From Nageia nagi (lineage: Eukaryota > Plantae > Pinophyta), in NCBI GenBank assembly GCA_050084985.1, contig JBITNC010000001.1, forward strand, positions 80,910,001 to 80,974,000: a DNA stretch of 64,000 nucleotides, given 5' to 3'. A program made the position numbers and the translations under genes. How positions within the stretch are numbered: position 1 is the first letter of the stretch; each line of letters opens with the position of its first letter. The notes beneath the pieces were generated by a model. That model was not told where the DNA came from. It saw only the letters and a list, made by a program, of their open reading frames with translations, and searched no databases. Shown here in pieces: positions 1,508 through 31,743 of this stretch.

Positions 1508-1653
1508 TTTTAGGTTTTAATGGTTTAGGATTTTAGGTTTTTAAGGGTTTAGGGATTTAGGTTTTTAAGCGTATAAGGTTTTAGGGTTTGGTATTTTAAG
1601 CTTTAAGGTTTTAGGGTTGTAAAGGTTTAAAGGTAATTTAGGAGTTTAAGGGT
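1508..1653 (+). repeat. Degenerate telomere-like array (TTTAGGG-type, G-strand on +) inside CACTA copy 1
   Basis: Repeated tttagg/gggttta variants. Confidence 0.85.
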
Positions 1654-3347: not shown

Positions 3348-3359
3348 TCGACCAATTGC

Positions 3360-5760: not shown

Positions 5761-5953
5761 TTAATTAATTAGTTATTACATACAAATTAACCATTAAAAT
5801 AGTTAAAAAATAAACATCAATAATAATAATTTCATACATCCACGCAAACAAAAAATAGTAGCAATGTCCATATCAACATCAAATAGTAAAAATATCCATA
5901 TTTCATACCTCCATATAAATATTAAGCATCAAATAGTAACAATGTCCATATAT

Positions 5954-7177
5954 CTATACATCCATACAAATATTAAGCATTTTGATCTCCTGATCTAAAT
6001 ATGCCTTATGTATTGGAGTAAGTCTTATGTAATTGTATTAGATCCATAACTCATCACCAAGTAAAAGATTTCTAATAGGAACTACACCTACATAACTACA
6101 TATTTTTTTATATATCCAATCTTCTTGATCATTTTGAAATTTTACAAATTCATAATTCGGTGTGTGTGTGTGTGGTGCGTTTGGTGTTATTTTTGTATCA
6201 TGTAATATTTCTATGTATTTTTAATTGACCATCAATGTACAAAATTTTTATTTGATCTCATGCTACACTATGACCATTTTCACAAAGGTTGTATTTGAAC
6301 ATACTATGCATATATGATGATAATTAAATCCAAACATCTTATTTGTAAATTGGTCCATAAAAACACATCAATATTGGTGGTATTAAATCATGATGAATAC
6401 ACACAAAAGATAATATAAATAAATATATGCTAGCATCATGTAGATATTTTGAAGGTTTGATCATGTATGAATAATTGTAATAACTAAATTATTCAAAAGA
6501 TTTTGAAAAAGGTCTATCGATTGGCCATGCATTGTATGCCTCATGATCATATATATCTTAATATAAATATTATAGACGATTTGGCAAATAACTATCACCA
6601 ACACTCTCCAACAATAGGTCAAGTTACTCATTATTTATAATGATGTGTGTCATTGCTCTTTGAAGTCTTATTCTTTTGCATGTTCTTCCATCTTCATCTT
6701 GTTATCTCTTCATATGATGAATTTGCCTTTAATGTAATATAGTGCTTTTAATTTCATTTAGTAAAAATTATAAAATCAAATCAAATTTTTATGCTAATTA
6801 CCTCATGATCATGATTATCTTCATCAATATCCATCATGCTTCAATGGGATATTGATTCTTCATGTAACATTAATCATAATATTAAGTTAAATATTTCACA
6901 TAACATCATCAAAGTAAGAATTTAAATGATCTTACATTTCTACATATATAATTTCTTAAATGAAATTTATGTATCAATTAATTACATATACAACATATGT
7001 ACTTCTCCATTGATAATTTCATGGCATCCCCATCTCATCCTCAACTAATGAAACATGTGTCCTTAGTTGAGGAATATAAGGAGGCTCATCATCATATGAA
7101 GATACATATCTACTCTTTTGAGGAATATAAGGCATATATTTCTCATCTAAGGACACATCAATATTCTTGGTCTTCAT
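5954..7177 (-). pseudogene. SET-domain (lysine methyltransferase-like) gene carried by CACTA copy 1, decayed, about 3 coding exons
   Basis: Manual translation: YMIKPSKYLHDASIYLF..LMCFYGPIY..ILYIDGQLKIHRNIT*YKN..PNYEF..VVPIRNLLLGDELWI*YNY. SET motif order is retained and the sequence is collinear with copy 2. Confidence 0.72.
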
Positions 7178-7542
7178 AGAGATATAAGCCACTAACTCAC
7201 CTACTATCAAATTTTTAAAAATAAGAAATCATTACTCATATTATTTATAATATTTTTTAAAAAAAATAAATCATCTATACAATAACTACAAGTAAAATAG
7301 ATCCAAAAAGATAATTAAAATCAATAATATAGGAATGTTTTCATAAACCTTTGACCAATGATATTAACTACCATGCCAAGAACTAAAAATAAAATATAAA
7401 ATTCCCTCTCAGCTCAAGTATCGATCCCCCCATACAGTAACAATATTGAAAAATATGTGAGCTCATGATTATCATTAACTTTTAAATCATATAATACATT
7501 GTACATGATTCCATATCTAAATATATATATCTGTGCATGTAC

Positions 7543-8195
7543 ACTAAACCTAACCCCAAATGGTTACCCCTAACTCTTACCATTAACACTAACCCTAACC
7601 CTAACCCTAACCCCTAAATCATAACTATAATTCTAAATCCTCATCCTAACCTTTAACTGCTTAACTTAACCCTGACCCTTAATCCCTTACCATTATCATT
7701 TATCTTAACCCTATCCATAACCCCTAACCCTTAAAACCTAAACCCTAAACCTTAATCCTTAACTCTAACAAAAACTTCTAACATTTAACCCCTTACCTTA
7801 ACCCTTACCCCTAACCCTTAAACTCTAACCCTTGAAGCCTAACCCTCAACCTTAATTTCTAACCCAAACTTGTAACACCTAACCCCTAACCCTTAAACCC
7901 TATCCTAAAACCCCTAACCCTTAAACCCTAACCCTTGAACCTTAACCCCTAACCCTAACCTCTAACCCTAAACTATAACCCTAACCTTCTAACCCTAACC
8001 TCTAACCTTAACCCCTAAACCCTAAACCCTTAAACTCTAACCCCTTCTTAAAACCCTAACCCATAACCCTAACCTATAACCCAAACCCCTTGCCTTAACT
8101 CTAACCCTTATATCCTAACCCCAAATCTTAAACCCTAACCCAAACCTAAACCCCTAACACTTAAAACTTAACCCCAACACTTAAATCCTAACCTC
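7543..8195 (-). repeat. Degenerate telomere-like array (CCCTAA/CCCTAAA on +) upstream of the SET gene
   Basis: aaccctaaccctaaccctaa, taaaccctaaaccct variants. Confidence 0.92.
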
Positions 8196-9222
8196 CAATT
8201 TTATATATTTAGTTTTTTTCTAAATTATAATATTTATAATTTTTTAATATTTATATTTATAATCTTTTATTTTTTTATTATTAATTTTTTAATATTTATA
8301 TTTATACTTTTTTAATTATTAAAAATTGGTATTATAATTGTTTTGTGTTTTTTTTTATCGTTTCTAATACTACTACCTATGTGTACCTTAATGCCATAAA
8401 AGGTTGGTGTTAAGGCATCAATTACAGGATCAATGCAATGCTTGATGCAAATCTTAATGCAAAGTGCATCAAAAATTACATCAAATCAAACTAGCATAAT
8501 GAAAATTTAAAAAGACAAACCTATCACTTTCATTCTGGTCATTTTGTTTTTCAAACTTGAGTTGTATTTTTATGAGATAAGGGTTTAGGCTATTAGTATG
8601 TGTTTTCTACCAAATGGTTTGAATTTTTTAAAGATTTGAACATGATTTATTGATTTTAATCTAATTTTGTCAAATGTTTTGATAAAGTTTTGCAAGAGAA
8701 GTAGTTTTCTCATCATTTCTTCAAATTTTCTACATATTTGGGGAGGTACATACAAATCAACTATTTTCTATATAATTTTCCTAAATTTTTGTAAGTTAAA
8801 AAAAGATACTTTTCCAAAAACAACTTAGGGTTTTGTAGAAAGTAGGGTTTTTTTTCAAAAAAACCTAGGGTGTTTCTTGAAAATTTTGAGTTTTTACTAA
8901 AAAAATAGAGTTTACTAAAAAACCTAGGGTTTGAACTAAAAAAACTTAGGATTTTTACTAAAACACTAAGATTTTTGCTTCAAAAATATAGAAAAATAAA
9001 TAGAAACATAAAACAACATACTTGGATGCCCAAGCTATCCAAAATTCCATAATGCCCTAAGTTTGCACAAGAAATTTTGCTCCAATTTTGCTAAACTATG
9101 CACAAGTTTACTTTGTGAATATAGGATTTGAGAATAGAGTTAAATAACATATAAATTTTAAAATAAATAATATATAAATTTTATTATAATTTAATAAATT
9201 TTAATTAGAATTATGATTACGA

Positions 9223-9505
9223 TTTAGGGGTTATGGTCAAGGGTAAGCATTAAGGGTTAGGGGTTAGGGTTTAAGGGTTATAATTAAGGTTTAAGGGTTA
9301 AGGATTAGGTTTTGGGTTAGCAGTTAGGTTATAGGAGTTAGGTTTTAAAGGTTATAATTATGGTTTAAGGGTTAGGGGTTAGGGTTTAGGGTTAGGGTTT
9401 AAGGGTTAGGGATTAAGGTTTATAGGTTAGGGGTTAGGATTTAAGGGTTACAATTAGGGTTTAAGGGTAAGGGTTTGGGATTATGGTTATAAATTTTGGG
9501 GTTAT
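9223..9505 (+). repeat. Degenerate telomere-like array (TTAGGG/TTTAGGG on +) upstream of the TnpA-like gene
   Basis: gggttagggttagggttt variants. Confidence 0.9.
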
Positions 9506-9755
9506 AATATTTTAAATAATATAAATTTTAAATTTTAAAATAACATAAACTTTAAAATTTTATATATTATAATTTAAAATTTTAATTTTATAAATTAAAA
9601 ATTTTAGAATAATATGTTTATTTTTTCCAATTTCTGATATTAGGCTTAATTTTTATTAATTTATGACATTAAGTTTATTCTTTTTATTTATTTATGACAT
9701 GAAGTTTTATATCAATGATATTAAATTTTTGATTACCTATATTTAGTGATCATAA

Positions 9756-10281
9756 TGATATGAAAGAAAAGACCTTGAAAAGAGAAGTTACAACATGGTC
9801 CTCGAGATGATAAGAAAGTGCTTGTAAGTATCAATATGTATTAATATAATAATGATAAATTTTAATTAATGCTTTAATTTTATAAGGAAAATATTTTTTT
9901 TAGGGATAGTTACTATGAACAATGTTTAAAATTGAGAAAATAATATTTATAACCAAAGAAATGGAGGAAGATTTAGGTATTGAGGCTTTTTCTACAACTC
10001 CAGCTACCATAAGCACTAGACTACACCCTCCAAGCACTCCACATGGTAATATTTTTTAATGATTTGTTAATATATTATTTATGAATAAAGTAATATTGTT
10101 AAATTATTTATTTTTGAATTGGTAAAGGTGATGTGATTGTTGAAAGTGCAGAGTCAATTAATCAAGAGACCTCTACATTTTCAACATCAAAGGGAGCAAA
10201 GGGGATTGAGACATGTGTCAAAGGAGATGATGAAGTCATGTATGATGAAGCTAGTAAGAGTTGATTTTTGAAAAAAAAATA

Positions 10282-10313
<32 letters not shown>

Positions 10314-11330
10314 TGCAATATATTAATTTACTATTTATTTTCAAATATTGTTTCAATTTTTTTTACAATTTCCTCAACAATACTGTGTATCTGTATTTTG
10401 ATGCAATATTGGATATTGAATGGAAGAAACAAGAAAAAAAGGTATGTTTTTTTTTCATTATTATTAATAGTAATTTATAAAAATATGTTTAGTGATATTT
10501 AAAAATTTATTTTATAAAAAAGTAAAAACTAATCTCTTATTTTTTGTATTTTAAATTCAAAAGGCAATTGATTAGATCACCTTAGAAGAGATTGGGGTGA
10601 TGGGTGGAGTGTAGCAAAAGCACTCCAAACAACAAGTCGTAACTTGAATTGGAAAAGGGAACACTTGAAGCGATCCATAAAAAAGCTTCCACTAGATGAT
10701 CATATGGGTGCCAAACCACTAACATGTACCAAGAAAGTATGGAAATAAATGGTCAAAAAAAGTTAATGATGATGAAGGGCATCTCAAGTTCAAATATAAA
10801 CTATCATTGTTAGAAAAGCTTCATATATGCACACCTTTATTAAATCAAAATTAGTTGGCATTACACATCATACTCGTAGCCAAGAAAAATGTGGAGTTGA
10901 GACCACATTTGTGAGTATATTTGTAAATTATTTAATATTTTAAAAGAAATAGTTAAGTAAGATAATATTGTTTAATTAAATATATATTTTTTTATAGTAC
11001 CAAAGATTTGGAAGACTTCCAACATCAGAGGAATTGGCTTATATACTTAAAGAAGGTGTTGACAAATTGATCACATTGGTGGAGGAGGTAGGTAATTAGT
11101 AATATGTTATGAGATTTTAATTTATTTTGTTATGTAATTAAGATTTTTAATTTCTATTTATTTACTAGCATTTATTTAATTTTTTAATTACAATGGGGTT
11201 CATCATTAGTGCTAGTATAGGTTGAAGATCAAGTTGTTGAGAATGAGATTGTTGAGGATATAAGTGGTGGTGGTAATGGTTATGATCCACCTAGTGCTAG
11301 TTATAAGCTTAATGATCATGATGTTGATTG
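9756..11330 (+). pseudogene. Multi-exon second CACTA gene, probably TnpA/PTTA-like, decayed
   Basis: About seven purine-rich exon-like blocks with GT..AG boundaries. They encode LDHLRRDWGDGWSVAKALQTTSRNLNWKREHLKRSIKK and YQRFGRLPTSEELAYILKEG. The family call is inferred from position and resemblance. Confidence 0.55.
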
Positions 11331-11523
11331 ATGATACATTATGATTTTATACATTATAATTTTATAATTGACATTATGCTACATTTATGATGTGATTTGA
11401 CATTTTGATATATTTTCATATTAAATTTTAAATTTATGCCTAGAGTTGAATTTCATATTTTATATTTATTTATTTAATTCATTTCAATTTAATAAAAAAC
11501 TTAAAATACAATATTTAAAAATA

Positions 11524-11530
<7 letters not shown>

Positions 11531-11571
<41 letters not shown>
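11531..11571. repeat. (TA)n microsatellite
   Basis: Perfect TA run. Confidence 0.9.
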
Positions 11572-11572
<1 letters not shown>

Positions 11573-12101
11573 CTCCTAATGCTATTCTTGATGCTACTGA
11601 AGACACTAATACAATAAAATGTAATTATCAAGTGACACTATCTTTAACATTAGATAAACTTCTTTTGCATGTGGGAAAGATCTATAATTGACATTACATG
11701 TGATACTAGGAAATATGCTAATATAAAACAAAATGATTTTATACAAGATGTTACATGAGCGTAAATGCTTACACTAAATTTCAAACCATTGATGTAAGGA
11801 AAGAAGTAATGAAAGGCACTAAGCATGATGCTAAATTAACATAAATTGACATTACAAAAGATGCTATGTGGTTGCAAGTGGTGATGCAAAATTTAAATAA
11901 ATTAATGCTATGGAAGACACTACAAATTATATGTTAAAATATGCTCATCCTAATGTAGTTTGACATTATCATAAATCTAATATTGTATTTTTGTATGATG
12001 CAAAAAAATGAAGTTATTATTGATGTGTACGTTAGCATCGAACATGGAAAAAGGATTTTAGAAAAAACAAATTGATGCTAAATGGGTTTTGTGTTGTAGT
12101 G

Positions 12102-14020
12102 AGCCCAAGGAAGAGGAAGAGGAAGGAGTAGGACGATTTCAAGATAAAGAAGGTGCTCAAGGAAGAGGGAGAAGTGGTTCTCCAAGAGATGACAAAAGAG
12201 ATAAACAATATTACTACTATAACAAGTTTTGCCACTATGAAAAGGAGTGTATGCCAGTGAAGGCTTATCAAGAGGGATGTTAAAGCACATACTATGGTGA
12301 AGAGGATATCTCTAATTTATTTTTTAATTATGCTAACACAACTTAAAATTTTGATGAAACTTGGCTCCTTGACATGGTTGTTCCAACCATAATACCAACA
12401 AGGGGGGGTTATTTTGTGCCATGAATGACTCCTACAAGTCCAAGATAACACTTAGTAATGAAAAAGCCATTCAAGTTGAAATCATAGGAGCTATGGAGGT
12501 GCACACCAATCAAGGTAAAAATAAGGTTAATTATGCTTATTTCACTCTAAATATGAAGCATAACTTATTAATCTTGGGCCAAATAATGGAAAAGAATGTT
12601 TGAAGATAGGAAGTGTGTTATTATTGATAAGAAAAATGGTACAAACATGTCGTAATTATTCTTATGATAAGGAATATAATATTTCCTCTTAATTTTGGAG
12701 ACAAAAGTTCTAATTTTGATAATGTTACAATTGATGATAAAAGTTATCTTTGGCACTTGTGATATGGGCATCTTAAATTTGCAAGTTTGAGAATGTTGAT
12801 TTCAAATGAGATGGTGTATGGGCTACCAAAGGTCCATGAACACAAAGAAGTATGTGAAGGTTGTGCTTTGGGAAAGCAATCAAGGGAAACATTTCCAAGA
12901 TTCCAACCATGGAGAGCCTTGTATCCTCTACAACTAGTGCATAGTGATATTTGTGGTTCTATGTAAACTTCAAGTATTGGTAAAAGTTTCTATTTCCTTA
13001 CCTTTATATATGACTACTCAAGGATATGTTGGATCTATTTTATAAAAATAAGGGATGAAAATTTTACATATTTTAAGAATTTTAAGCATAATTTGGAAAA
13101 TAAAAGTGGTTATTATCTGAAATGCTTAAGAATAGATAGAGGGGGAGAGTTTTGTAGTAATGGATTTTTTGCAATATTGCAAAGATTATGTTGTAAGAAG
13201 CCAACTAATAGTTGCCTACACAGCATAAAAAAATGGTGTAGTTGAACATAATAATAGGACATTGGCTAACATTGCTAGGAGTATGCTCCAAACTAAGAAA
13301 CTACGCAATCTTTATTGGGTTGAAGCAATTAGGACTATTATTTATATATTGAATAGGAGTCCCACTTCTATTTTAGATGACATAACTCCCTTTGAATCAT
13401 AGTATGATAAAAATTCAAATGTAAATCACTTTAAGGTGTTTAGTTTCTTGGTAAATGTGGATGCTACAAAAATGCATAGAAATAAGTTAGATATAAAGAG
13501 TGAGCCATGTATATTTATTGGTTATTATGAATAAAGAAAAGCATATAGACTTTATAGTCCTAAGTCTCACAAAGTTGTTATTTCAAGGGATGTTATTTTT
13601 GATGAAGGGGGAGCATGGGATCATAAAAAACTTCTTATTGATGCTAGATAATTTGAAGAAAGTTCTCCAAATTTACAATATTTAGTTCAGCCCAACCAAG
13701 GAAATGTGTAATCCAAAGTACTAAACAATCGATAAAAGCTTATGCAAGTGCAGCCCAAAATTACTCCAAGTGATGGTGATGCTTCTCCAAATGATGTTGG
13801 TAAGGTAAAGAAAGGTAAAAATATGTTTCAAATTCATATATATTATCTAATGTTTGATACAAATTATCAAATAATATTTAAAATAAGTCAAGCACAAGAA
13901 CTAGACCATGTAGTAAAGAGGCTAGAAAATCTACATTTGTATGTTGATGAAATGGATGGTGTACCTAAGGGTGAATTGGTTGGTTTTGCTTTGATGGCTA
14001 GTGATGTGAATAGTCTCACA
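12102..14020 (+). pseudogene. Copia gag 3' part, protease, integrase
   Basis: Zinc knuckle, WLLD protease, CEGCALGKQ, LVHSDICG, LKCLRIDRGGEF, VVISRDVIFDE; ends at FALMASDVNSLT just before RT. Confidence 0.9.
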
Positions 14021-14489: not shown

Positions 14490-17400
14490 AAATCCTATGA
14501 GTTCAACTGAATTGAAATCTTGAATCTTTTGGTTATTAATTTTTAGTATCTCTAACTCTAAAACCTAAGTGTTGTTTTAATATGGTAATCCTTCCCACTA
14601 AATTAGGTATTTGTTGTAGCTCCCATCTCTAGTGGTGATCACCTTCTTATCAAGCACTTGTGCAACTCTATCCTTTTCTTACTAAGCATTTGTCATAACA
14701 AATTTATTATATCCTATAATTCACCATCCTTGATAGTACCAATATACTAAAATAAATCAAAAATATTAAAAATAGGTGAAATATAAAACTCATCTGGAAG
14801 CTCTACTCTATAAGCATTATCATTTATCTTCTTCAAAATCTTGCAAGGCCCAATTTTCTTAAGTTTTAGTTTGCTATACATACCCTTAGGAAATATTTCT
14901 TTCCTAAGATGAACCATGACCATATCACCCTCTTCAAATACTTTCACCCTTCTGGGTGCATCAATAGCTTCTTTGTAGTGAGCATTACTACTATGTATTT
15001 TTTTTATCTCTAATGCTTGTACTTTCTATATATGCTCAACAAATGTGTCTACATCATCATTAAATTATTCCCCAATTGGTAACTCAACTAGATCTAATAA
15101 AACTACAAGATTATGATCATAAATAATTTGAAAAGGAGATTTACTTATTGACCTATTCACTGAGCTATTATATGCAAATTCAACTTGTGGTAAGGCTAAA
15201 TCCCATTATTTTGGTTTTTTCCCAACTATATAACGTAAGAGGTTTCCCAAGATTTTACTCACTACCTCTATTTTCCATCAATTTATGGGTGATAATTACT
15301 ACTAAACTGTAGCCTAGTAATTAACTTCTTCCACAACATCCTCCAAAATTGACCTAAGAACTTAGTATCTTGATCAAAAGAAATAGTCTTTGGAACACCA
15401 TGCAATTGCACAACCTCATCAAATAATAAGATTGCAATCCCAGTGGCATCATTAGTTTTCTAAAATCAATAGTGGCATCATCAGTAGTAGGTTTCATAAA
15501 CTAAATCCTTATCTCATTATATCTTGGGCAACCCCAACATAAAATTCATGGTCCTATAGGAACAAGTAGTGGCATATACAACTGTGTATTTTATGCATGG
15601 CCATTAACCATTTTGCACATTCTACATCTAGAGATAAACTTGATTATGTATCTCTTCATCTTTGGTAAATAACACTTCTCTACAAGAGTCATAATTTTGG
15701 CTACTCTAAAATGACTAGCTAAACCCCCACTATGTAATTCCCTCAAGATGTTCTCTCTCATAGAGACATTGGGAATGCATAATCAATTACCCTTAAATAA
15801 GTAACCATTCTAAAAAAATATTCTTCAAAAATTGTATGGGACTCACCCTCTACTGCATTATTTCATAATATTCCCAAAATCTACATCAGATTCATACATA
15901 TTTTTAATCCCCTCAAATCCTACCACTTCATTCTCCATAATGGTAAACAACAAGACTCTCCTACTCAATGCATCAACAACCTTATTTTATTTTCTCAACT
16001 TGTGTTTCAATATAAATGTATACTATTGTAAAAATAAAACCCATTTGGTATGCCTAATATTTACCTTTTTTTTTAGAGTTGACATACCTTAATGCTTCAT
16101 GATCAGTAAAAAAAATAAACTCCTTTGAGATTAAGTAGTGCCTCCAATACTGCAATGCTTACATAATTGCATAAAACTTCACATCATATGTAGGATAAAT
16201 CTCCTTCAATCATTTAGTTTATCACTAAAAAATACTATAGGTCGATCTGCCTGACTCAATACACCACCAATTCCAATAAATGAGGCATCACAATCAACCT
16301 CAAATACCTTGCTAAAATCTGGTAACACTAGAACATGAGCTTTTGATACCTTATTCTTCAAGATTTCAAAACTCTCAATTGTTGCCTTAGTCCATAAAAA
16401 ATCCTTCCCCTTTGTGCACTTAGTTATAGGGGTAGCTACACTATTGAAGTTCCTGATGAACTTTTTGTAAAAGGTAACTAGGCCATGAAAGTTCCTTACT
16501 TTTGTTATAGTTCATGGAATAGGCCATTCTAGAATCTCTTTCACTTTATCATCAACCATCCTCATGCCATATCTTGATATTAGGAATCCCAAAAACACTA
16601 AACCATCTTGAAGAAATCTACATTTCTGTAGGTTGACATATAATTTCTCCTTCCTGAGCATGTCTAACACCAATTTCAAGTGTAACAAATGCTCTTCTTC
16701 ACTTTTACTATAAATTAAATTATCATTAAAATACACAACCATAAACTTACCATTATATTCTTGTAGTACTTTTTTCATCAATTTCATAATTGTACTAGGT
16801 GCATTAGATAACCCAAATGGAATCACCATTGACTCATACAAACCATATTTTGTCTTAAAATTTATCTTCCATTCATCACCTTCTCAAATTCTAATTTGGT
16901 AGTAGCCACTCTGCAGATCAATTTTACTAAAGTATTTAGCTTCAACCAATCCATCCATTATGTTATCCACTCTTGGCATAGGATATTGATACTTTATTGT
17001 GATATTATTTATGGCTTTACTATCCACACACATCCTCCATAAACCATCTTTCTTTGGGGTTAGCAATGTTAGAGTCATGCATGGAATCATACCTCCCTAA
17101 ATAATCCCTTATTTATCAACTTTGTCACTTGCCTTCCCAACTCTGCATTCTATGTTAGGTTCAACTGATAAGCTACTTGATTTGGGAGTGTTGATCCTTG
17201 AATCAAATCCATATGATGTTGGATATCCCTCTTTGGTGGCATTGTATTTGGTAACTCCTTTGGTGTGACATATTCATATTCTCTTAGCAACTTAGCTACT
17301 ATTGTAGGCATAACCACATCCTTTGTTTCTATCTTCCTAGTTTTTAAGGCATAATAGAAGCTAGCTTTCATAATTGCTACAAGAAACTACTTCATTTTCA

Positions 17401-19030
17401 TCAAGCTCTCACTCAATCCATTCTCATTCAAATGTATAAGAACTACATTTACACCATCCCAGAATGTGTGAGTATTCTTTCTACCATTATGATTAGCATC
17501 CCTATTGTACTGCTAAGGTATCCCCAATAGAATGTGACATGCATCCATTGGGATCACATCACACCACACTTCATCCTTGTAGGTTCTCCAAATTGAGAAG
17601 TTAACTAAACACCTCTTATCAATGGTCATTGCTTTTTTTTTAATATATGAAACATGATAGGAGTTTGGATGCTTCTCACATGTTAGATTTAATTTATCAA
17701 CCACGATATTAGAAACTAAAATTTTGTAACTACCACCATCAATGACTATGTTACATACCTTTCCTTCTGAAGTACATCTTGTGTGAAAAATATTATTACA
17801 CAACCAAGAATCTTCACCATATTTTTCTTACATGTTTATCTTCTTTAGAATAATAAGGATTCTCCTTATCATGATAGTTTCACCCATGTCTCAATCTCTT
17901 CCTCTTCTTCAACTATAGCAACCCTAGCTTGTCCCCTCTATTTAGCATCATACTAAGGATATTCAGATGCTTTATGACCTTCCTCTCTACATCTATAATA
18001 GATGCATGGTTCCCATGGTTCATTCCCTATCCTACCTCCACCATTATCTCTTACTCTTGAATATCCTCTTCCTCTTTAGCAGGTATCTTGACCCTATCCT
18101 CTTTTATCCTCCTATATGGAAAATATTGAAGATTCTCCTTTGGAAAAATTATGTCCACCATGCCCTCAATTTGAATAGGGTGTTAATCCTTTATTTCCCC
18201 CTCTACTAATCCTCTTAATCTTCTCAACATTTAGGGCCATTTGGTATGCATCCTTTATAGTAAGAGTACAGTGCATAATTATCTCATATTGAATAGAAAA
18301 ACTTAGGCCATTCACATACCTTACAACTCTCTGCTCATCTATCTCATTATGCTCCATCCAAATGGATTACTTGTACAACTAATTGGTGTAATCTTTGATG
18401 CTCTATTCTTTCTATCAAAGATTTTGGAATCTATGAAATAAGGTTTGGAAATAATTTACAGCAATAAATTTCTCTTGCAACTTCTTCATCTTGGCCCAAG
18501 CCCTAATATTCTCTTTCCCCTTTCTCTATCATGAAGCACGTAGATGATCCCACTAAATCAATGCATATCCCTTCAACTTCATGCATGCAAGCTTCAACTT
18601 CTTATCTTTAGCAAGACTACTCCATTCAAAATACTTCTTCATGCTATTTACCCAATCAATCAAATCCTCTAGTTTCAACCCACCAACATACTCAGGAACC
18701 TTGATCTTGATCCCATCTTATTTTCCTTTTAATCATTCCACTTTAGCCTATTTTCAAATCATTACTCTACTATTGCAATACACTTAGTTCTTCATCTACC
18801 TCAACATTAGGTCCATATTCCCCAAACATGTTCTCACTATCAGATCCCAAATTTGATTGTGCATTGGGTATTCTCTCCCCCATGTGATTAATTGCACTAG
18901 TTAACCATGACATTTGTGTATGCATATCCTCTTTCTACCTATTCATGTAGGTATAAGCACAAGTTACACCTCTGCATGCACCTCTAGCTTATCTTCTAGT
19001 TGGAATCTTCCCTCTATTAGTGAGTTCACA
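14490..19030 (-). pseudogene. Gypsy gag-pol (gag, protease, RT, RNase H, integrase, chromodomain-like tail)
   Basis: NIFHTRCTSEGKVCNIVIDGGS (PR); [42 protein letters not shown] (RT); FEVDCDAS (RH); [21 protein letters not shown] (INT C-term); YLI*WEGLP. Confidence 0.92.
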
Positions 19031-20907: not shown

Positions 20908-23900
20908 TTAGCATTGCAAATTGTCTTCCTCATCAATATGTACAATATGTTTTCCTCTAGGATTACATTCAATTACAAACCACTTTTTATCATCATCTAT
21001 ATCTAGGATGAAATATATTTGATTGCAATGTTGCGGTAAAATATAAGGCTCTCTATTGTCAGGTAAAATATGTGTGGAGTTGATTGCAAAGTAATCACTA
21101 GGTCTATCATGCAATATTGTTCTTCTATTGAGTGTGTCAAACCACTTACATTTAACTATCACACACTGAAATGACCTATAATATAGTTGTATAATTTTTT
21201 GAATTTTTCCAACACATTTTAATTTTCCCTATATCGATTTTGTATCTCTTGAACTTGCATGACTTTCTTGATCAAAATCATCCATCACTCCATAATCAAA
21301 TTTTATTATTCTATCATCATTATTCTCTATTATAAAGTGTTGATCGTATGCCCACATTGCTGGAAAATAAAATGCCTACATATATTTACATGAAAAATGT
21401 TATTAGTGCTTGCACATATTTACACAAAAATTGAATTCTTATAAAAATATTAATAAAAATAATCACCTCAAACTTGCATCCTATAGTGATATTTAATGCA
21501 TTTTTATCATCTTCATTTATTTTTCCTTCTACAACTTGTTGTTTCATTTCAATTTCATTCTTAATTCATGATCTTGGACATTCTTATGGCTAATTTTTCT
21601 CTCTTAGATTTTTAGGTAGACAAGATGTACCCCTTTGATTATACCTACAAAATAAGGCATGTTCTTGTTCAATTGCCCTTTTTTTAGTTTGGTACAACTC
21701 AATCCAATTTTCATAACATGCATAATGCATCATGATAAATTAGTTTATAGATTCCTGAAGTCATAATTTGTAAATTAATAATACCATAATGCATACTTGT
21801 TAGGTAGTAATTAAGCATTAACACAATTTGTAAATCCAAAATGCATGTGCATATCTTAAACATAGTTAATACCTTCAAGAGAATACAGTGTTCCACATGT
21901 TTCTAATACCTCCCCTTCTAATTTCTCACTATTTTTGTTTGCATTCCACATATTTGGAATAGAAGTAATAATTTGGTAAAGATACTTGCATAAAAAAATG
22001 ATTCCTATACAATGTATCCCTCACCAACAGATCCTTCTAGTTGTGAATGTTGTCTAATAAATCCCTTCAGCACTTTTAAAAATCTCTCCATAAAAAACAT
22101 ATTTCTATCACTCATAACACCTGCCATGTCAATATCATCTACTAGGTTGATCAATAGGTGCACTTGTATGTCCATAAAAGTAGGTGGTAATTCTTTTTCT
22201 AATTTGAAGATAATTTCAATAATTTCTCTATGCCATCGATCTATTGCAATCACATGTATCTCCTTTGAAGATAACCACTTGTTCATGAAAAATTTAATAT
22301 CATAAAAATATTACATGTCAAAATGCATAAAAAATTAGAAAATAAGAATAAACATATGTTATATTATTTTTCATAGATCCATATTATAACATGACATACC
22401 TTATAAATAATGAAAGTCAATTGATTTCATGTCTAAGATCAATGTGTAGATCCCCACATCCATGAATTGCAATTGGAAATATATGTTATAAAAAGTATGA
22501 GCATAGATATAGCAAGTATTTTTATTTCGATAGAAAATGTGAAAATTATAATATGAGATCAATACCTTCATAAAGTTTTGGTAATCATGAGTCTTGAATC
22601 CTATGATTTTACCATCAGCATTGAATGCATTTCTTAGAGATGATTCATAATTTGTTGTTGTTATGATATTTTGGATAAGTTTGTGTAACTTTTTCACTTC
22701 ATTTTTTTTCATAAGCCATGTTGTGGTATGTGCTTTTTTTCTTCCATCTTGATAGTACCTTATCCATAAATATCTCATTTTATAGAATATCTTTAAAGTT
22801 ATTTTTCATGGCATAGATATCTTCTTCTTTGGTTGTTGTATACTTATACAAAGAAGTTGCAATATTCTTTACAATGTGCATAGGATCCATTAAATATGTC
22901 ATTAACAACTCCTTCCAATATTCCAGTATATAAAATATTGATAATTTGTTCATGCCTAAAAACATGTAACCAATTCATGATAAACATTGTATATTTTCAA
23001 AATAATAAACATATTACAAATATATTGTACTATATAATATTTCACATGTTGGTAAATCATTTTCACTAAGAATAATCTCATCATCTAACCCTAAAGTAGT
23101 ACCTTCATCACAGGCTCATTTCCTAACATTTTCCACATATTATTGGTACTTTATGAACCAAATCATAGGAGTTTTGTAAATAGGAATAGGGGTTTTATAT
23201 ACTCGACCATAGGCTCCCCTTTTTCGAAAAGTATAATCCATTAGAAAATATTCCCTATGGCCAATATATTCCATATTATGCATCTAGCATGAATGTCTCG
23301 ATGGAAGATTTTCCTTACATCGTAGATAAGCATGATAACCTTTTGTATGAAGACTTGTGATAAGTTTTATTAGAGAATGCATATAATTCATATGGTTATA
23401 AAAAATCAAATATTCACATGTCTGAACTATTGTATATATGCATACCTACAAAAACAAAAATCCATGGATAATCATGTATAGTCCAACATAGTATGCCATA
23501 ACATTTGAATTACCTTTGATTGATAGGGCTATTTATATCATATATTTGAACTCAAATTGATAGGTCTATTTATATCATATATTTTAACTCATTTCCATAA
23601 GAGCTGCAACTTGTCAATTACTGGTTTAAGGTAGACATCTATGTGTTTAACTTGTTTCCTTATAGGGATTATAATAGCCAACATCAAATGCTCTTTTCTT
23701 ATGGACATCCATGGAGGTATGTTATAATTAATTATAACAATAGGCCAACATGAATAAGTGGATGATTGGTTTTAAAATGGATTGACACCATCCATTGCTA
23801 AACCTAATCTAATACTCCTAGGTTCATCTTTAAATTTCTCGAGCCACTTCTCCTCTATATATTTTATTTCTTTACTATATTCAGGTATATGCAACACATC

Positions 23901-24764
23901 TTCTTCACTTGTATTTCTTGCATGGAAATCCATTAATTCTGTGTGTGACTTACACCGAAATATTCACATTAACCTAGGAAGGATTGGCATTATGTGAGCA
24001 ACCTTATGTGGAGTTTTTTTCCCTATTTTGACTTTATATCTTGATTCTTCACATTTTGGACATTCAATATTTGTATCATATTCTTCTCCTCTATACAATA
24101 TGCAAGCATTAATACATACATGATATGAATTATACTCGACCCCTACATCTTTCATAATATCATGTACTTTATTGTACAAATTAGGGATGACATTATCACT
24201 TGGCAATAACTTTTCTTTTAGTAATCTGTAATATCAATGAAAAAAAATTATGTAGTTAATTTGATAGAAATTAAAATATTATAAAATAAAATAAAATTCA
24301 CATCTTAGAAGAGAAGTGAAACTTATATCTAACCATCCATATTTGACTTTTATTTTCATCAAAAGTAGGACCGTCGATAATATAGTCTTGTTTTTTCTTT
24401 CATATAATTTTATTTTGGAAGTACTATACATGCTATCCCTTTCTAAATCATTATCTCTTTCATCATCATCAACAAGTACATAAAGGGACTCAAGTAAACC
24501 ATCACTTTCATTTTCTTCATCAACATTATTATTGTCATCATCATGACCAACATTATCCTCTCTTAATTCATCATCATCAGTGCTTGAATCCCACATAGGT
24601 ATTTGAATAGGAACTATTGGATTTGGTTCAAACATAAACTGTGCATATTATTCATGGTTCCATGCTTTTTGTAGTATCTTCTTATCTCTCCTACTTACAT
24701 TATTTTGATGCAATGTTGGTGTAATAGTTATCATTCTTAAGTGCTCACGATGACTATTTGTTTC
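20908..24764 (-). pseudogene. CACTA TnpD transposase, full-length but decayed (Transposase_21, DUF4218- and DUF4216-like regions)
   Basis: YHVCINACILYRG..CPKCEESRY; DPMHIVKNIA; GFKTHDYQNFM; LEKELPPTFMDIQVHLLINL..MFFMERFLKVLKGF; KCKWFD..EPYILPQHCNQIYFILD. Confidence 0.93.
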
Positions 24765-26062
24765 CTGTTAAATCAGATGTTAGTTGTTACAAAATATTAA
24801 TTCAAAATTTAAAAAAATAAGTGTAACAAATGTAAAGTAATTTGATAAATCTATTTATACACATGATCAATCCATATATATATTTTGATACATCTAATCA
24901 TATAATTTGATATATTCATACATATAACCAATTGATATATACAAACATACACATGATCTATACATACAAATTGATACATCCATTCATACACATCAATAAT
25001 ATATTAAGTTTTGTTTTTTACTTTTTGGATTTGATCCTAGACAAATTATTACATTTTGATCACCTCCTAACTCCAAACTTCATGGCTTATGTCTTGGAGT
25101 AAGTTTCCTATAATTGTAGTGAACTAGTAGCTCATCACCAACATTAAGAGTTTTAATAGGAACAAAAACTATATAATTACTCATTTTTCTACCACGAAAT
25201 CTTCTTTATCATTAGTATGCTGGTGAAATTCACAATTTGGTGTCCATTCTTCACCTACATAACTATTTGTGTATCCAGCTATGTTTCCATGTATTTTTGG
25301 TTGACCATCAATGTATAAGAGTTTTGAACGCTTCAAACTTGGAATCTTGAAATTATTTGCACATAATCCATATGTGAACATATTTTACATATATGATGCT
25401 AATTATTTCTAATATGTTGTTGTGTAAATTGGCCCACAAAATGGCATCAATGGCTCTATCTTAGAACTTGGAGTAACAACCATAATTCTATGTATAAACA
25501 AACTTTATCCATAGCACTTTTTATATGGTTTGATCATGTATCTATAAACATAATAAGGAAAGATCTCATAAGCCTTTAGAAAATGCATTTTAGTTGTCCA
25601 TGCATTGTATGCTCCATGATCATATTTATGTTGATATTTAAGTTGTAGCTTTTGTGGCATGTGCATCAAACCCAAATCATGAACATCCTCCTCTATTAAA
25701 TCAATTGGATGCTCATGTGCACTAGAACATGCAACCACTGCTAATTGATGAAGCCGCTTTTGAAATCTTATTTTTGTAAGCATCTCTCTAACCTTATTTG
25801 ATGGACCTACACATTATTTTGGCTTCATCTACTGGATCTACATATTTATTTTATTTAGTTATATTTGATATAATTTAATATATAAGAGTATAAAAATCAA
25901 ATCAAATTTTGATCCTAATTAATTACCTCATGGGAATCATCATCTTTTGATGAAAAGGATAACTCATTAATCCTTTGCATATTTTGTTCCTACAATATTA
26001 GCAATAAAATAAAGTTAAATATTAAAAATAATATTATAAAAGTGATAATTTTAATGATCTTA

Positions 26063-27084
26063 GGGTGAAAGCAAGAAGTTGGGTCCACTTAAAGGGGAAG
26101 TGGGGAAAATCATCAAAGTTAAAATTCAATGTCAAAAAAATCAAGATCCTGATTTAGGTTCAAAATCCTAATAAATATCGATATCTTGATATTTAAAGCT
26201 AAAATACCTATAAATAATCTTCAATTTTACCTCATATTTAGGCTTGAAAAAGGCTTGGTGAGCCAATACTTAGCCTTAGACCTGCAAGTATATGGTAATT
26301 TTAATGGAAAATCTCAACTTCAAGCATATGTTTGATGGAGTTTTTGGTAGAATTTTTTTATGAAATTAAAGCCCACTATAGAATAAAGAGTTTAGATTTT
26401 AAATATATAATTTTTTTACAATTGGATAAGATTTTATATTTTTTAATTATTTTTTTAGTAAAAGTGGTTCATATACTTGAAATATGAGGGTCTCGTATTT
26501 TCTTAATAAGTTTTTTTTTTTTTTTGGGGGGCGGGGGGATTTATGAAAAATAAATTACATAGGGACAAAATTTATATAATTCTCTATAAGAATAAAAAAA
26601 AATTAAAAAATGATTGAGTTTCAATCAAATTATGATGGACGGCCTTGAGCACTTTTTGAAACCACAAACATGCTCAGTACAAAATTAATAAAAAATAAAT
26701 ATTGGTTCAAAAATTATGGAAAAATATCATAAAAAATATCCAATGTGTTAGGTATATTTTCCTAAAAGGATTTTAAAAAATACCTCAATTTTAGTCAAAT
26801 TATGGTCGACGAACACATGCATCATATGGTCCAAAAATGGTTTTTTTTAAAAAGTGATTTTTGTTCATCCTATTGAATTTTAAATTATATGATATGGGTA
26901 TTGGGAAAAATTATATATTTGGAAACTAGAATCTGAGAACTACATTTTCACTTTAGTGATCATTTTCATGATTCCATGTCTAAGTACTTCAAAGTTTGAG
27001 ATCAATCGTACCCAAATTTGAAAATCAAGGCAAACACTTTTAATTTTTGGCCTTAAAGTGGACCCAACTTCTTGCACCCATCCC
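26063..27084. mobile_element. Non-autonomous PIF/Harbinger-type element (1022 bp) in an intron of the SET gene
   Basis: TIRs GGG..GCAAGAAGTTGGGTCCACTT / AAGTGGACCCAACTTCTTGC..CCC; TTA TSD at 26060-62 and 27085-87; the empty site is visible in CACTA copy 1 near 6932. Confidence 0.9.
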
Positions 27085-27129
27085 TTACATTTCTACATTA
27101 TATGTAATAATATTTATCTTACCTCATCC

Positions 27130-27495
27130 TCATCTAATGAAACATCACTCCTCATAGGACATGTAGAAAATAACTCAAGCTCTGAATCAGATGACACATC
27201 ACTCCTTGGCCTCCTAATAACTGGTGCAAGAAACTCTAAATTAGATGACACATCACTCCTTGGCTTCCTAGTACCTAGTGTAGGAAAATACTCTAAATCA
27301 AACGAAACATCATTCCTTGACCTATTAGTAACTAGTGCAAGAAACTCTAAATCATATGAGACATCACTCCTCAACCTCCTAGTAATTGGTGCACTAGGAA
27401 ACTCATGAATCAAATGACACCACTCCTAAAAACTCCTTGACACTGAGGTAGTGGCATCTGAATATGTGAATCTCATGACACATCACTTCTCCCAT
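27130..27495 (-). repeat. Coding tandem repeat (54-57 bp units, RSDVS.. peptide) in the first coding exon of the SET gene
   Basis: Repeated gacacatcactcct on +; ORF 27114-27413. Confidence 0.85.
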
Positions 27496-28449
27496 GCCTT
27501 GGTGGCATGATATAAGCCAATTCACTAACCTATATTAAAATTTAAATAAAAAAAGAGATTAGTACAAGAATAGTAATAATCAGTAAATATTTCAATCTTA
27601 GATCAAATCAAAAATACAAGTAAAATTTTTACTTTTAGAATTAGAATTATTAAATAAGTAAAACTTTTTCAAATACAAATATAAAATGGTGGTATATACT
27701 CTACACAATAGAGGATAAATCATCAATCATATGCAACATGGGCCCAATTTCCCATCTAAAGTTAGAAGCCATTTCCCCTCCTTAATGATCATGCTAATGG
27801 TGATAGTGGGAATGTTTGAAAAGTCATGCTAGTTGGGCCTATCCCTCAATGTATAATTAAAATATATCCTTAAATGGGTGACCTCCCTAATCACCTTTTA
27901 GGTTTGTAGTAAAATATCAATAAACTACTCTCATTATATCATGATAGTCAAATTTATTAGGATTAGATTCATTTAAAAGTGTCTTATCTAGCCTCACTTG
28001 GTCAGGGGGCCATAAGGTTTTAAAAAGTAACTCCCCAATTTCATTAGATGAATGGAGAAATGCCCAAAATTTATTAAAAGTATCTATCATAAGGAGGTAG
28101 GAAGAGAGCCACCAATCGCCAAACTTAGGCTTATAATAACTATGAATTGGAGTGTTAGGATACCATTTCCAATCATTTGGTTATAGTTTTTAGAATAAAA
28201 TATCAATATTTTATTGTAAGTACTCATGAAGAGGGAAATGTTCTTTTAGATCCTTAAAATACTCTTTATTTATGTTGGTATCTCAAATTGTATATTAGGA
28301 TTGTATGGACCTTAGGAAGCATGATTGTATCTTAGGATCATACATATCACTCCTAGATGCCCTAATTGCATTATTTCTATCAAGGAAGGCCAACCTCCCT
28401 CTTGGGGCTCACAATAATCGTTGAAATTATTTCTATTAAGGAAGGCCAA

Positions 28450-28662
28450 CTAACCCTAACAACTAAGTACCCTAACTACTAACCCTAACTAGTAACTCTA
28501 ACCCTAACACTAACCCTAACAATAACCCTAATGTTAATTGCTAACCTTAACACTAAAACTAACCCTAACCCTAACTTTAACTGCTAATCCTAACCCAAAC
28601 CCTAGCAACAACCCTAACCCAATTGCTAATTGCTAACCCAAACCGTCATCGCTAACCCAAAC
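28450..28662 (-). repeat. Degenerate telomere-like array (CCCTAA on +) upstream of the SET gene in CACTA copy 2
   Basis: taaccctaac variants. Confidence 0.88.
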
Positions 28663-30115: not shown

Positions 30116-31321
30116 GAATGAAATTGTCATCTTCATTATTTTGTAGATTAAATTTATTGTTATATATAACATGCATTAATATTTTGGATCCTTATTTCTC
30201 CTCTTTCTCTTTTTTCTTTGCACTAGATATGGGTTCCTCTTATGGTGGTTCTATTCCATCTATTAAGCATCCAAATAGTATTCCTAAAGACAACTTCTTT
30301 AGCAGCTTTTGTCTTAGCTACTCCACTCAAGGATCTTTCCTGGGGCACCCAAGTCAAAAGGGGGGCAACACAAGGTCCCTCAACATCAACCATTCATCTT
30401 CAGTAAAAGATAGCATTAGCAAAAAGATCAAAAAAATTTCTTCTATATCTTGGCTTCATTTCTTCTTTGGACATGTAATTTCATTACTTCAATCACACAT
30501 CCAAAGAGGAGCAAATGTAGATGCCTCAAAATGAACCTTTATGTATTTAATAAATCATTTTAATCCCTTAACAATGTATTATTTGAAAAGGGATTTATAA
30601 TGTATAAAAGAGATGTAGGCTATATATTTGACCCTTGTGAATTAGAAAAGCATTATTTTTAAAAAAAATTAAACCTAATGTGTTAACCCTAATTTGTTTT
30701 GCACAAACCTAGCCCTAAATCTTTTCATGATGACATTGGTTTTCATGTTCTTTGGACTTGGTAGGAGAACATCTTTGGCCAAAACTAAGAAGGGACACCA
30801 AGTTTAAGGTAGTATAGAAATCTCCATTGTATATGCTTCTAAGGAGGATAAAGTGAAAGCTATTGGAAGATTGTAATGATTATATCAGATGTTGAGATGA
30901 TGTATATGCAACTCATCATTTCAAGATTTACAATTTTTTTGGAATAAAATAGTGGGCAAGGTTGTTGTTTTGGGTGATGGTTATTGTTGGGAGGAAGATA
31001 GAAGAATACTCATGTTGGTAAGAAGATTTAGTATTTGGTACATGAATTTCTAATGCAAGTCTTTATATTCTAAAATTTAGATTTAAAATATAGATTATTT
31101 TATGTCTATATGTTGAAATTTTTGTAAGGGTTTTGATGGATTCTCTTGTTATTTTGAGTACTAAGTTGTTTGGTTATAGCAGACATAGAGTATTGTAGAA
31201 TCTTGCATGATCGTTTGAATTTTGATTTCATAGTTTTCATTGTTACTATGCATATTTTTTCCATTTTTTAGTTTTCTTATTAGTTTTGTAAGATATTTGT
31301 CCTAAACTTAAATGTTTCAAA

Positions 31322-31743
31322 TCCTTAACCTTTAAACCCTAATTGTAACCCTTAAAACCTAACCCCTAATCCCTAACCCTTAAACCCTCACTATAATCCT
31401 TAACCCTTAAGCCCTAACCCCACACCCTAACCCAAAGCCTTAATCCCTAACCCAAACCATAACCCTAACTGTAACTATAACCCTAACCCTAATTATAACC
31501 ATAACCATAACTATAACCCCTAAATGATAACCATAACCCCAAAACCTTAACCCTTAAACCCTAACTATAACTTATAAAACTTATCTCCTAAACCCTAACA
31601 CCAAACCCTAACCCTAACCCCAAACCCTAACCTCAAATCCTAACCCCTTACCCAAATATAGACCCCTAACCCTTAACTATAACCCTTAACCCAAACCCTA
31701 ACCCTTACCCTAATCCCTTATCCAAACCCCTAACCAAAACCCT
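31322..31743 (-). repeat. Degenerate telomere-like array (CCCTAA on +)
   Basis: aaccctaaccc variants. Confidence 0.9.

Follow-up and report, generated by a model that had tools for sequence, protein, structure and literature searches.

A Decayed SET-Like Module Upstream of TnpD in a High-Copy CACTA Family of Nageia nagi

Introduction

Genes for SET proteins are known on Helitrons. In primates, the domesticated single-copy host gene SETMAR joins a SET domain to the Hsmar1 transposase, the transposon having landed beside a SET gene. The VANC protein of VANDAL Mutator elements, which is intact and is not a SET protein, experimentally causes hypomethylation. In plant CACTA elements, extra sequence in the 5′ part has usually been gained by the capture of host genes.

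Among other DNA transposons, HarbingerS and oomycete MuDR elements encode a SET histone methyltransferase, according to the account of Kojima and Jurka (2014, Repbase Reports) cited in PMC12730594. Closer to the elements studied here, Plavaka of the red alga Bostrychia, a member of the EnSpm/CACTA superfamily, has an accessory gene, PAG2, with a SET domain matching PF00856 (bioRxiv 10.1101/2025.02.11.637652). Plant CACTAs have themselves acquired domains and, in their 5′ part, captured fragments of genes, in Chenopodium Jozin and others; the additions described include Transposase_24, Peptidase_C48, and AP2 fragments, and SET or methyltransferase is not mentioned among them (PMC8978399). Given these additions, the view that CACTA elements encode TnpD and TnpA only, from which an initial annotation of the present locus had started, is too strict (PMC8978399). 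Pack-CACTA transduplication has been documented as well (PMC13317346). Both transposon-borne SET genes and extra domains in plant CACTAs are already known; of a SET gene in a land-plant CACTA, we found no report in the literature.

The window analyzed here is the whole stretch of 64,000 nucleotides from a contig of Nageia nagi. It holds two copies of a CACTA family, in which the initial annotation had described a SET-domain gene next to the transposase.

Results

Two CACTA Copies in the Window

The main features of the two copies are the following.

1125–12101, minus strand: copy 1, a complete CACTA element of 10,977 bp bounded by terminal inverted repeats (TIR CACTACAACACAAA)
5957–6698, minus strand: copy 1 counterpart of the SET-like ORF, broken at 10 places, with about 67% DNA identity to copy 2
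3354–5515, minus strand: TnpD remnant of copy 1, its C-terminal half deleted
20911–24638, minus strand: TnpD transposase of copy 2, fragmented, identified with Pfam

The TIRs of copy 1, at 1125 (plus strand) and 12101 (minus strand), match at 15 of 16 bases. The flanks (AGG and AGC) agree at two of the three bases that a target-site duplication would share, and the insertion site is a copia-type gag. The SET-like ORF of this copy lies within the TIR-bounded element, upstream of the TnpD remnant. For copy 2 no CACTA TIRs were found in the window, and the copy is truncated or interrupted; the homology between it and a contig described below, L001, begins at a non-TIR boundary near 28280. Pfam analysis of the pieces of copy 2 TnpD identified Transposase_21 (tnp2, PF02992; E = 7e-7, at 23775–23933), DUF4218 (PF13960; E = 6.5e-21, at 22008–22286), and DUF4216 (PF13952; E = 1.6e-9, at 20911–21162), and found no N-terminal Transposase-associated domain. 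The long TnpD ORF of this copy starts at 24638/24635. Telomere-like arrays are also present.

The SET-Like Gene of Copy 2

Upstream of TnpD and on the same strand, copy 2 has the following features, given in the order of transcription.

27123–27508, minus strand: putative exon 1, with an ATG at 27508 and a donor GAG/GTAAGA at 27123/27122
26063–27079, minus strand: nested nonautonomous TIR element, MITE-like, 1,017 bp, in intron 1
25927–25989, minus strand: exon 2, 21 codons (EQNMQRINELSFSSKDDDSHE), from splice signals compared among copies
25083–25837, minus strand: exon 3, the SET-like ORF, translated through four in-frame stops and one frameshift
24765–25082, minus strand: C-terminal tail and repeats, separating the SET-like ORF from the micro-exon
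24699–24764, minus strand: micro-exon of 66 nt (ETNSHREHLRMITITPTLHQNN), flanked by canonical splice sites (acceptor AG, donor GTAAGT)

Translation of 24900–27600 on the minus strand recovers in order the peptides quoted in the initial annotation, and its reading through in-frame stops and one frameshift is reproduced exactly. The distance of about 230 bp that it gave between this gene and TnpD agrees with the start of the micro-exon at 24764 (24993 − 24764 = 229). Exon 3 reads YRYMIKPYKKCYG, stop, SLFIHRIMVVTPSSKIEPLMPFCGPIYTTTY, stop, K, stop, LASYM, stop, NMFTYGLC, continues to LLYIDGQPKIHGNIAGYTNSYVGEEWTPNCEFHQHTNDKEDF, and after the frameshift, near 25196, ends with NYIVFVPIKTLNVGDELLVHYNYRKLTPRHKP and a stop. 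The in-frame stops are at 25507–25505, 25411–25409, 25405–25403, and about 25387–25385. Introns were considered as the cause of these stops and rejected, since the available GT-AG stretches are 39–58 nt long and their flanks keep one frame. The SET-like core spans 25546–25110, with significant alignment to SET profiles over about 25270–25110 (KIHGN...PNCEF...VGDELLVHY). GC content by codon position in the SET-like frame is 0.42/0.31/0.23, as is typical of a frame that once coded for protein.

Exon 1 contains a 54-bp tandem repeat in 4.5 units (27180–27427), which gives 18-aa repeats of the type RSDVSxxLEFLA; its frame is broken upstream of 27413, and it has homologues in L001 (1765–2279) and in a second contig, L003 (3510–3897). 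The acceptor of exon 2 (TGTAG/) is found in copy 2 and L001, and its phase-0 donor (GAG/GTAATTA) is invariant in all four copies compared. By the same comparison, the introns of the SET-like gene are in phase 0. Downstream of exon 3, the conserved tail (SLELGGDQNVII..PK.KNKN) is followed by 22-bp tandem repeats (24873–24927), which offer several phase-0 GT donors. The micro-exon is open in frame in four of four copies, and a phase-0 intron of 60 nt (24698–24639) directly follows it. The nested element in intron 1 has TIRs of about 30 bp, starting GGGTGCAAGAAGTTGGGTCCAC. Since L001, L003, and copy 1 have no insertion at this position, the nested element lies outside the family module.

Recurrence of the Module

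Four copies were compared: the two of the window and those of L001 and L003 (L001/L002 and L003 are two independent plant contigs from metagenomes). Self-comparison of the window aligns 5966–6564 with 25041–25637 and 3514–5470 with 22549–24469, each block being about 67% identical. The stretch from exon 1 into TnpD, the SET-like exon included, is collinear between copy 2 and both L001 and L003, at 82–87% identity. In all four copies the SET-like ORF occupies the same slot on the same strand and is followed by TnpD each time. The claim that copy 1 has the same gene in the same slot is thus borne out (6698–5957, upstream of the TnpD remnant at 5515–3354), and so is the wider claim that the gene belongs to the family: these CACTA elements carry the SET-like ORF as a stable module. 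The protein sequence of the exon 3 frame is conserved between copies whose DNA identity is only about 67%. Together with the recurrence in L001/L002 and L003 and the GC content by codon position, this places the SET-like ORF beyond chance. The family is highly repeated, as indicated by 28,617 contigs of one run (X1) that have at least 80% likeness on 24000–27600. In a search of sequencing runs, none contained more than 27% of the words.

Decay and Selection

Each of the four copies has 4–10 breaks in the SET-like ORF (four stops and one frameshift in copy 2, 10 breaks in copy 1). One in-frame TAA is common to all four, and it could reflect two independent changes of CAA by C>T decay. Protein collections (1.84 billion representative and 5.8 billion clustered sequences) hold only fragments of the family of at most 133 aa. 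About ten such database fragments are all interrupted, and a search of the representative library with the 92-aa N-terminal piece returned only 62–108-aa fragments of the same family. A 1,665-aa repeat protein from this search (E = 2.8e-4) was dismissed as unrelated, and a cluster look-up of seven fragments gave neither names nor accessions. No intact SET-like ORF was found in the four genomic copies and the roughly ten fragments, which represent only a small part of what is a very large family.

Ratios of nonsynonymous to synonymous change were computed from a frame-defined alignment of the copies. Between copy 2 and L001, dN/dS is 1.69 (CI 0.89–3.75) in the SET-like frame, against 0.52 (0.37–0.75) in TnpD (P = 0.0005). 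Between copy 2 and L003, the values are 1.05 (0.60–2.04) and 0.52 (0.35–0.80) (P = 0.027), and between copies 2 and 1 they are 0.71 (0.45–1.14) and 0.53 (0.40–0.69) (P = 0.14). All the SET-like intervals include 1 and all the TnpD intervals exclude it. The SET-like frame shows no purifying selection, unlike TnpD in the same copies. Neutral evolution agrees with these values, the SET-like ratio being compatible with 1 in every comparison while TnpD stays at about 0.5. In the deep comparison, the interval around 0.71 spans both 0.5 and 1, so that early constraint, i.e., a once-functional gene of the element, is possible. Estimates for the close copies based on tblastx were rejected, because tblastx selects the frame that minimizes protein change, and a rerun restricted to HSPs was set aside because one HSP was in the wrong frame. 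Contigs of runs that were guessed to be RNA, and are possibly DNA, include a few on 25044–25945, with 80–90% likeness and no canonical splice joint.

These data bear on whether the module is a working accessory gene. Intact masters elsewhere could encode a SET-domain protein, or a SET-derived pseudo-enzyme, that acts on chromatin at the element (in anti-silencing or targeting), alone or fused in frame to TnpD, and the copies seen here would be their dead descendants. Such a gene would fit the retention of the module in one slot across subfamilies about 33% diverged, the coding-type GC by codon position, the deep dN/dS below 1, and the occurrence of SET genes in transposons of other superfamilies. 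The conserved phase-0 splice signals and the micro-exon with its AG acceptor and GTAAGT donor make an in-frame fusion to TnpD structurally possible, and copy 2 TnpD lacks the usual N-terminal domain. Moreover, four genomic copies were sampled from a family of thousands, in which intact masters could exist. Yet neither these copies nor the ten or so fragments contain an intact ORF, dN/dS among the younger copies is about 1 or higher against 0.52 for TnpD, the TAA is common to the four copies, the catalytic histidine is missing in all of them (see below), and the contigs guessed to be RNA show no canonical splice joint. We therefore regard a working gene as unlikely. A specific form of it, in which intact members express a SET-derived protein, maybe spliced through the 66-nt micro-exon to TnpD in the manner of SETMAR, and thereby steer integration or escape silencing, seems improbable. 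The proposal in the initial annotation of a chromatin modifier or anti-silencing factor at work is not upheld: all copies are interrupted and share the TAA, purifying selection is absent, and the histidine of the NHS motif is missing.

SET Identity of Exon 3

Curated models are silent on this exon. Stop-free pieces of the four copies and of six database fragments, compared in sets of four and eight, have no match to PF00856 or any other Pfam family at E ≤ 10. Eight pieces have no NCBIfam match, and no SET chain of the PDB was hit at E ≤ 10, either by phmmer with three pieces or by hmmsearch with tiled profiles (A2 and A5). In the ESM Atlas, the 66-aa middle piece has no usable match, and AF2 modelling of the longest C-terminal piece (77 aa) from an alignment of eight rows gave an unusable structure (pLDDT 48).

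More sensitive comparisons point to SET. With an HMM built from 120 PF00856 proteins, exon 3 read-throughs in which each break is written as X reach 8.4 and 7.7 bits (E = 9e-5 and 1.5e-4; Z = 1). When all 64 kb are divided into 2,112 six-frame windows, this HMM ranks the candidate first (7.3–7.4 bits, versus 3.7 for the next). In local hhalign, the family core scores 21.7 against a PF00856-derived profile (P = 7.5e-3; shuffles 11.9 ± 2.4, with 0 of 100 reaching it), and 30.1 against an independent profile of giant-virus SMYD-like SET proteins (P = 8.9e-4; shuffles 12.8 ± 2.1, maximum 20.5, again 0 of 100). The latter alignment puts PNCEF and IVFVPIKTLNVGDELLVHY on PNvxF and the GEELxxxY strand. 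Both profiles select one and the same stretch, in which register and order are correct and z relative to the shuffles is about 4 and 8; both alignments are confined to the C-terminal half (PNxEF ... VGDELLVHY; about 36–54 columns). In the reverse test, the family HMM gives 84% of real SET proteins a score higher than the 95th percentile for shuffled proteins. In the ESM Atlas, a search blind to the hypothesis gave SET or PR/SET for all ten best family-bearing hits; the clusters nearest to L003:4650–4952 comprise PR/SET families and plant fragments labelled "putative SET domain", with a score of 0.89, below the tool's lead threshold of 0.9. Since the score of global hhalign against the SET profile is reached by 20 of 100 shuffles, the N-terminal half can be called SET-like only from its motifs.

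The motifs themselves are unevenly kept. The end of the domain, of ELxF/YDY type with the catalytic tyrosine and a hydrophobic strand before it, is represented by IVFVPIKTLNVGDELLVHYNY, which aligns to ..GEELxxxY in the two SET profiles and is conserved in copy 1, L001, L003, and two further sequences (P0010 and P0011). The N and H of the RFINHSCxPN motif bind AdoMet. In this region the copies read GN(I)xGY(I/T)N(N/S)Y...PN(C/Y)EF; the PN and one N are retained, and the histidine is absent in all copies in either possible register. At the GxG position the four sequenced copies read CYG-stop-SLF, SRYSLF, SEYG-F, and DASIYLF; GxG is absent from these four, and the profile alignments do not reach this part confidently. 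In most copies of run X1 the codons at 25507–25502 are TAT-GGT (Y-G) instead of the TAA-AGT of copy 2, which gives ..YGLF at the SET-N position.

Overall, exon 3 is probably SET-derived as judged from these alignments, although the signal is weak. The part of the initial reading that stands is the C-terminal half, which aligns to two SET profiles; the blank curated models and PDB and the missing NHS histidine speak against the domain as a whole. That the exon instead encodes, or once encoded, a protein peculiar to this family, with a different or novel fold, its motif order being a chance GDEL..Y strand plus PN in an AT-rich translation, would agree with the blank Pfam, NCBIfam, and PDB searches of pieces and tiled profiles, the nonsignificant global score, the 36–54 aligned columns, the unconserved GxG and NH, and the subthreshold Atlas score, but is quite improbable given that two independent SET subfamily profiles choose the same stretch, that the SET HMM puts this locus first in the window, and that the hypothesis-blind search led to SET and PR/SET in each of its ten best family-bearing hits.

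Discussion

We favor, as reasonably likely, the reading of this module as a fossil passenger of an old high-copy CACTA family, with a last exon derived from SET, and not as a working chromatin enzyme. Under this reading, an old CACTA/En-Spm family of an AT-rich plant genome would have carried, on the strand of TnpD and between TnpD and the 5′ region, a gene of three exons, the last of them derived from the SET (lysine methyltransferase) domain. The module would have been gained before the split of the two subfamilies of the window, now diverged by about 33% in DNA, and copied with the element since. It is a pseudogene in every copy examined, having drifted without constraint at the protein level while TnpD was still maintained by selection. 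Such decay and drift in the sampled lineages are what suggest a passenger relic rather than a working chromatin modifier. The whole of exon 3 may once have been a complete SET domain, and the module was presumably once translated. It may have entered by capture of a piece of a host gene with its introns, rather than being an original gene of the element; no host donor gene was identified.

Transposons with chromatin enzymes are rare, and they matter for understanding how mobile DNA resists host silencing or turns it to its own use. If fixed in a high-copy land-plant CACTA, a module of SET type would lengthen a short list made up of HarbingerS, oomycete MuDR, Helitrons, and the Plavaka of red algae, and would be a natural case of a SET module directly 5′ of the transposase inside an element. 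As a fossil, it marks an old event of capture or gain and may point to an intact, expressed version in this genome or in relatives.

The likeness to VANC is one of concept only, that of a transposon-borne accessory gene acting on its own epigenetic state, whereas the evidence here points to decay. SETMAR shares with this locus a SET module 5′ of the transposase, on the same strand, with an intron able to join both; here, however, the arrangement lies inside a mobile multicopy element and the fusion is putative. HarbingerS and the oomycete MuDR elements are, like this family, DNA transposons with a SET-type ORF beside the transposase family-wide. They are PIF/Harbinger and Mutator elements of animals and oomycetes with ORFs reported intact, whereas here the element is a land-plant CACTA and all copies are degenerate. 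Plavaka PAG2 is likewise a SET-bearing accessory gene of the EnSpm/CACTA superfamily, but it combines a DNA methylase with SET and is one of three accessory genes of giant 17–19-kb elements in a red alga (bioRxiv 10.1101/2025.02.11.637652), in contrast to the single SET-like exon here, which is accompanied by an N-terminal repeat region but by no methylase and has no match in Pfam. The captures of plant CACTAs also place host-like coding sequence upstream of TnpD, spread with the family, and often decay; captured satellite arrays occur among them, as telomere-like arrays do here. Unlike the additions reported in plant CACTAs, this module has kept a multi-exon structure and was gained, on the reading preferred here, before the subfamilies split.

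Organization of the Module

Minus-strand translation of 24900-27600, in a window of AT-rich plant DNA (GC ~30%), reproduced exactly the peptides quoted in the initial annotation. The SET-like ORF of this CACTA copy (copy 2) is the last of three exons, whose junctions are all phase 0 and keep a single reading frame. This ORF is followed, on the same strand, by a fragmented TnpD, the CACTA transposase, in which no N-terminal Transposase-associated domain (PF13963) was found.

Features of the module in copy 2 and copy 1
27508-27123, minus: exon 1, ending at GAG/GTAAGA and containing a 54-bp tandem repeat
25989-25927, minus: exon 2, with donor GAG/GTAATTA invariant in 4/4 copies
From 25837, minus: exon 3 (SET-like)
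25837 to ~25196, minus: SET-like ORF, first frame, with 4 stop codons within
After the frameshift to the stop at 25082-25080, minus: SET-like ORF, second frame (translation)
24764-24699, minus: 66-nt micro-exon with AG/ and /GTAAGT boundaries, lying after the SET-like tail and before the long TnpD ORF
23775-23933, minus: Transposase_21 of TnpD (Pfam)
22008-22286, minus: DUF4218 of TnpD (Pfam)
20911-21162, minus: DUF4216 of TnpD (Pfam)
6698-5957, minus: SET-like ORF of copy 1, upstream of a TnpD remnant

The tandem repeat of exon 1 (27180-27427, 54 bp x4.5) encodes 18-aa RSDVSxxLEFLA units; it has a related stretch in copy 1 (7019-7210) and many length variants among contigs of other runs. In all copies the micro-exon is open; a 60-nt phase-0 intron comes next, and 22-bp repeats in the SET-like tail supply phase-0 GT donors. 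Given these donors, the micro-exon boundaries, and the phase-0 intron, a putative in-frame SET-TnpD fusion is structurally possible. Among contigs from presumed RNA runs, none had a canonical splice joint. Intron 1 of copy 2 carries a private insertion of 1,017 bp (27079-26063), its site being empty in copy 1 and in two metagenomic plant contigs, L001 and L003. This insertion is non-autonomous, with terminal inverted repeats of ~30 bp (GGGTGCAAGAAGTTGGGTCCAC...) and TAAG at both flanks.

Recurrence in the Family

Copy 1 is bounded by inverted repeats (CACTACAACACAAA) at 1125 and 12101 that match at 15/16 bases, and is inserted inside a copia-type gag. Its left flank (806-1189) holds a Retrotran_gag_2 gag, its right flank (12089-12283) a zinc-knuckle-like ORF. 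DNA identity between copies 1 and 2 is only ~67%. Further copies were sought in metagenome contigs by scanning for a degenerate pattern of the middle piece of the SET-like ORF. Three plant contigs were retrieved, the near-identical L001 and L002 and the distinct L003. The order of copy 2, from exon 1 across the SET-like exon to TnpD, is preserved in L001 and L003 at 82-87% identity; in L001/L002 an insertion of 5.3 kb (L001 3211-8542) splits the SET-like exon within its GDEL motif. Since the same ORF recurs upstream of TnpD in copy 1 and in the collinear L001 and L003, the proposal of a stable family module holds. At least one related genome also contains the family in high copy number, as 28,617 contigs of a DNA run (X1) match 24000-27600 at ≥80% likeness.

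Both CACTA copies contain degenerate telomere-like (TTTAGGG)n arrays (2551-3348, 7568-8198, 9216-9476, 28449-28620, and 31320-31743), in opposite orientations either side of the coding core and alignable between copies (7568-7986 with 31337-31735). Downstream of copy 2 TnpD lie LTR retrotransposon pol remains (~14700-18400, minus strand), with RVT_1 at 16515-16841 and adjoining integrase- and protease-like ORFs. Two direct repeats of 1.5 kb (50923-52460 and 62063-63572), 91.7% identical and ~11 kb apart, are probably the LTRs of one retrotransposon.

Relationship to SET Domains

Judged from sequence, the SET-like exon very probably descends from a SET domain. This part of the initial annotation stands for the C-terminal half, which aligns with two SET profiles, but curated models gave no match and none of the copies examined has the NHS His. 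No SET match at E ≤ 10 was obtained by Pfam or NCBIfam on all stop-free pieces, nor in PDB searches using pieces and tiled profiles. The whole exon was tested in scripts as a read-through with X at each break. For the first SET profile, viral contigs were scanned with a back-translated NHSCxPN...GEEL pattern, PF00856 was confirmed on the matches, and one match was expanded to 120 PF00856 proteins. In single-sequence tests, the resulting HMM scored copy 2 at 8.4 bits (E 9e-5) and L003 at 7.7 bits (E 1.5e-4). Across all 64 kb (2,112 six-frame windows), the three highest scores belonged to the SET-like candidate (7.3-7.4 bits, the next being 3.7).

With hhalign, the four-copy alignment matched this profile at P 0.0075 (2/159 column shuffles reached the score); core-trimmed, its local score was 21.7 versus 11.9±2.4 for shuffles (0/100 reached it), and the global score was not significant. 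In the reverse test against the family HMM, 84% of real SET proteins exceeded the 95th percentile of their own shuffles. A second, independent profile (giant-virus SMYD-like SET) gave 30.1 (P 8.9e-4; shuffles 12.8±2.1, 0/100 reaching it), pairing PNCEF and IVFVPIKTLNVGDELLVHY with the PN and GEELxxxY elements. In the ESM Atlas, a 101-aa C-terminal piece fell closest to PR/SET clusters and to plant fragments labelled "putative SET domain" (score 0.89, rated by the tool as a lead only). The N-terminal half aligns to SET by eye only; in the majority of family copies in X1, Y-G stands in place of the stop and Ser of copy 2, restoring ..YGLF at the SET-N position.

Decay and Selection

The SET-like ORF carries 4-10 breaks in each of the four copies. 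Among 1.84 billion representative and 5.8 billion clustered proteins, nothing was recovered beyond fragments of ≤133 aa, which come from other broken copies. The representative-protein query was the N-terminal piece, and the word-indexed search covers proteins of similar length. A TAA at 25405-25403 is common to all four copies, and is either ancestral or the result of parallel C>T decay of CAA. The GC content of the three codon positions (0.42/0.31/0.23) is consistent with a frame that once coded for protein.

dN/dS in defined coding frames (95% CI), with bootstrap P
Copy 2 vs L001: SET-like 1.69 (0.89-3.75); TnpD 0.52 (0.37-0.75); P 0.0005
Copy 2 vs L003: SET-like 1.05 (0.60-2.04); TnpD 0.52 (0.35-0.80); P 0.027
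Copy 2 vs copy 1: SET-like 0.71 (0.45-1.14); TnpD 0.53 (0.40-0.69); P 0.14

Overall, constraint is evident on TnpD and none is shown for the SET-like frame. Hence, constraint persisted on the transposase but, in the younger subfamily at least, did not extend to the SET-like exon; an early functional period would be compatible with the deep comparison (copy 2 vs copy 1). The breaks in all copies, the recovery of fragments only from the protein collections, the shared TAA, and the lack of constraint speak against a working chromatin modifier, and we argue that the module is non-functional, at least in the sampled lineages. It is quite improbable that master copies encode an intact, expressed SET-transposase. 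In conclusion, the initial observation is confirmed and its interpretation partly supported: a CACTA family carries, as a passenger, a SET-like module that is conserved yet decayed.

Comparison with Known Systems

Transposon-borne SET genes are described for HarbingerS, oomycete MuDR, and Helitrons (PMC12730594). In plant CACTAs, acquisition of additional domains, satellite arrays, and 5' gene fragments is documented (PMC8978399), and Pack-CACTA capture has been reviewed (PMC13317346). In the literature found on transposon-borne SET genes and plant CACTAs, there was no mention of a land-plant CACTA with a SET module. The precedent within the EnSpm/CACTA superfamily is Plavaka PAG2, with a DNA methylase and SET (bioRxiv 10.1101/2025.02.11.637652); its host is a red alga, whereas the SET-like module of the same superfamily described here resides in a land plant.
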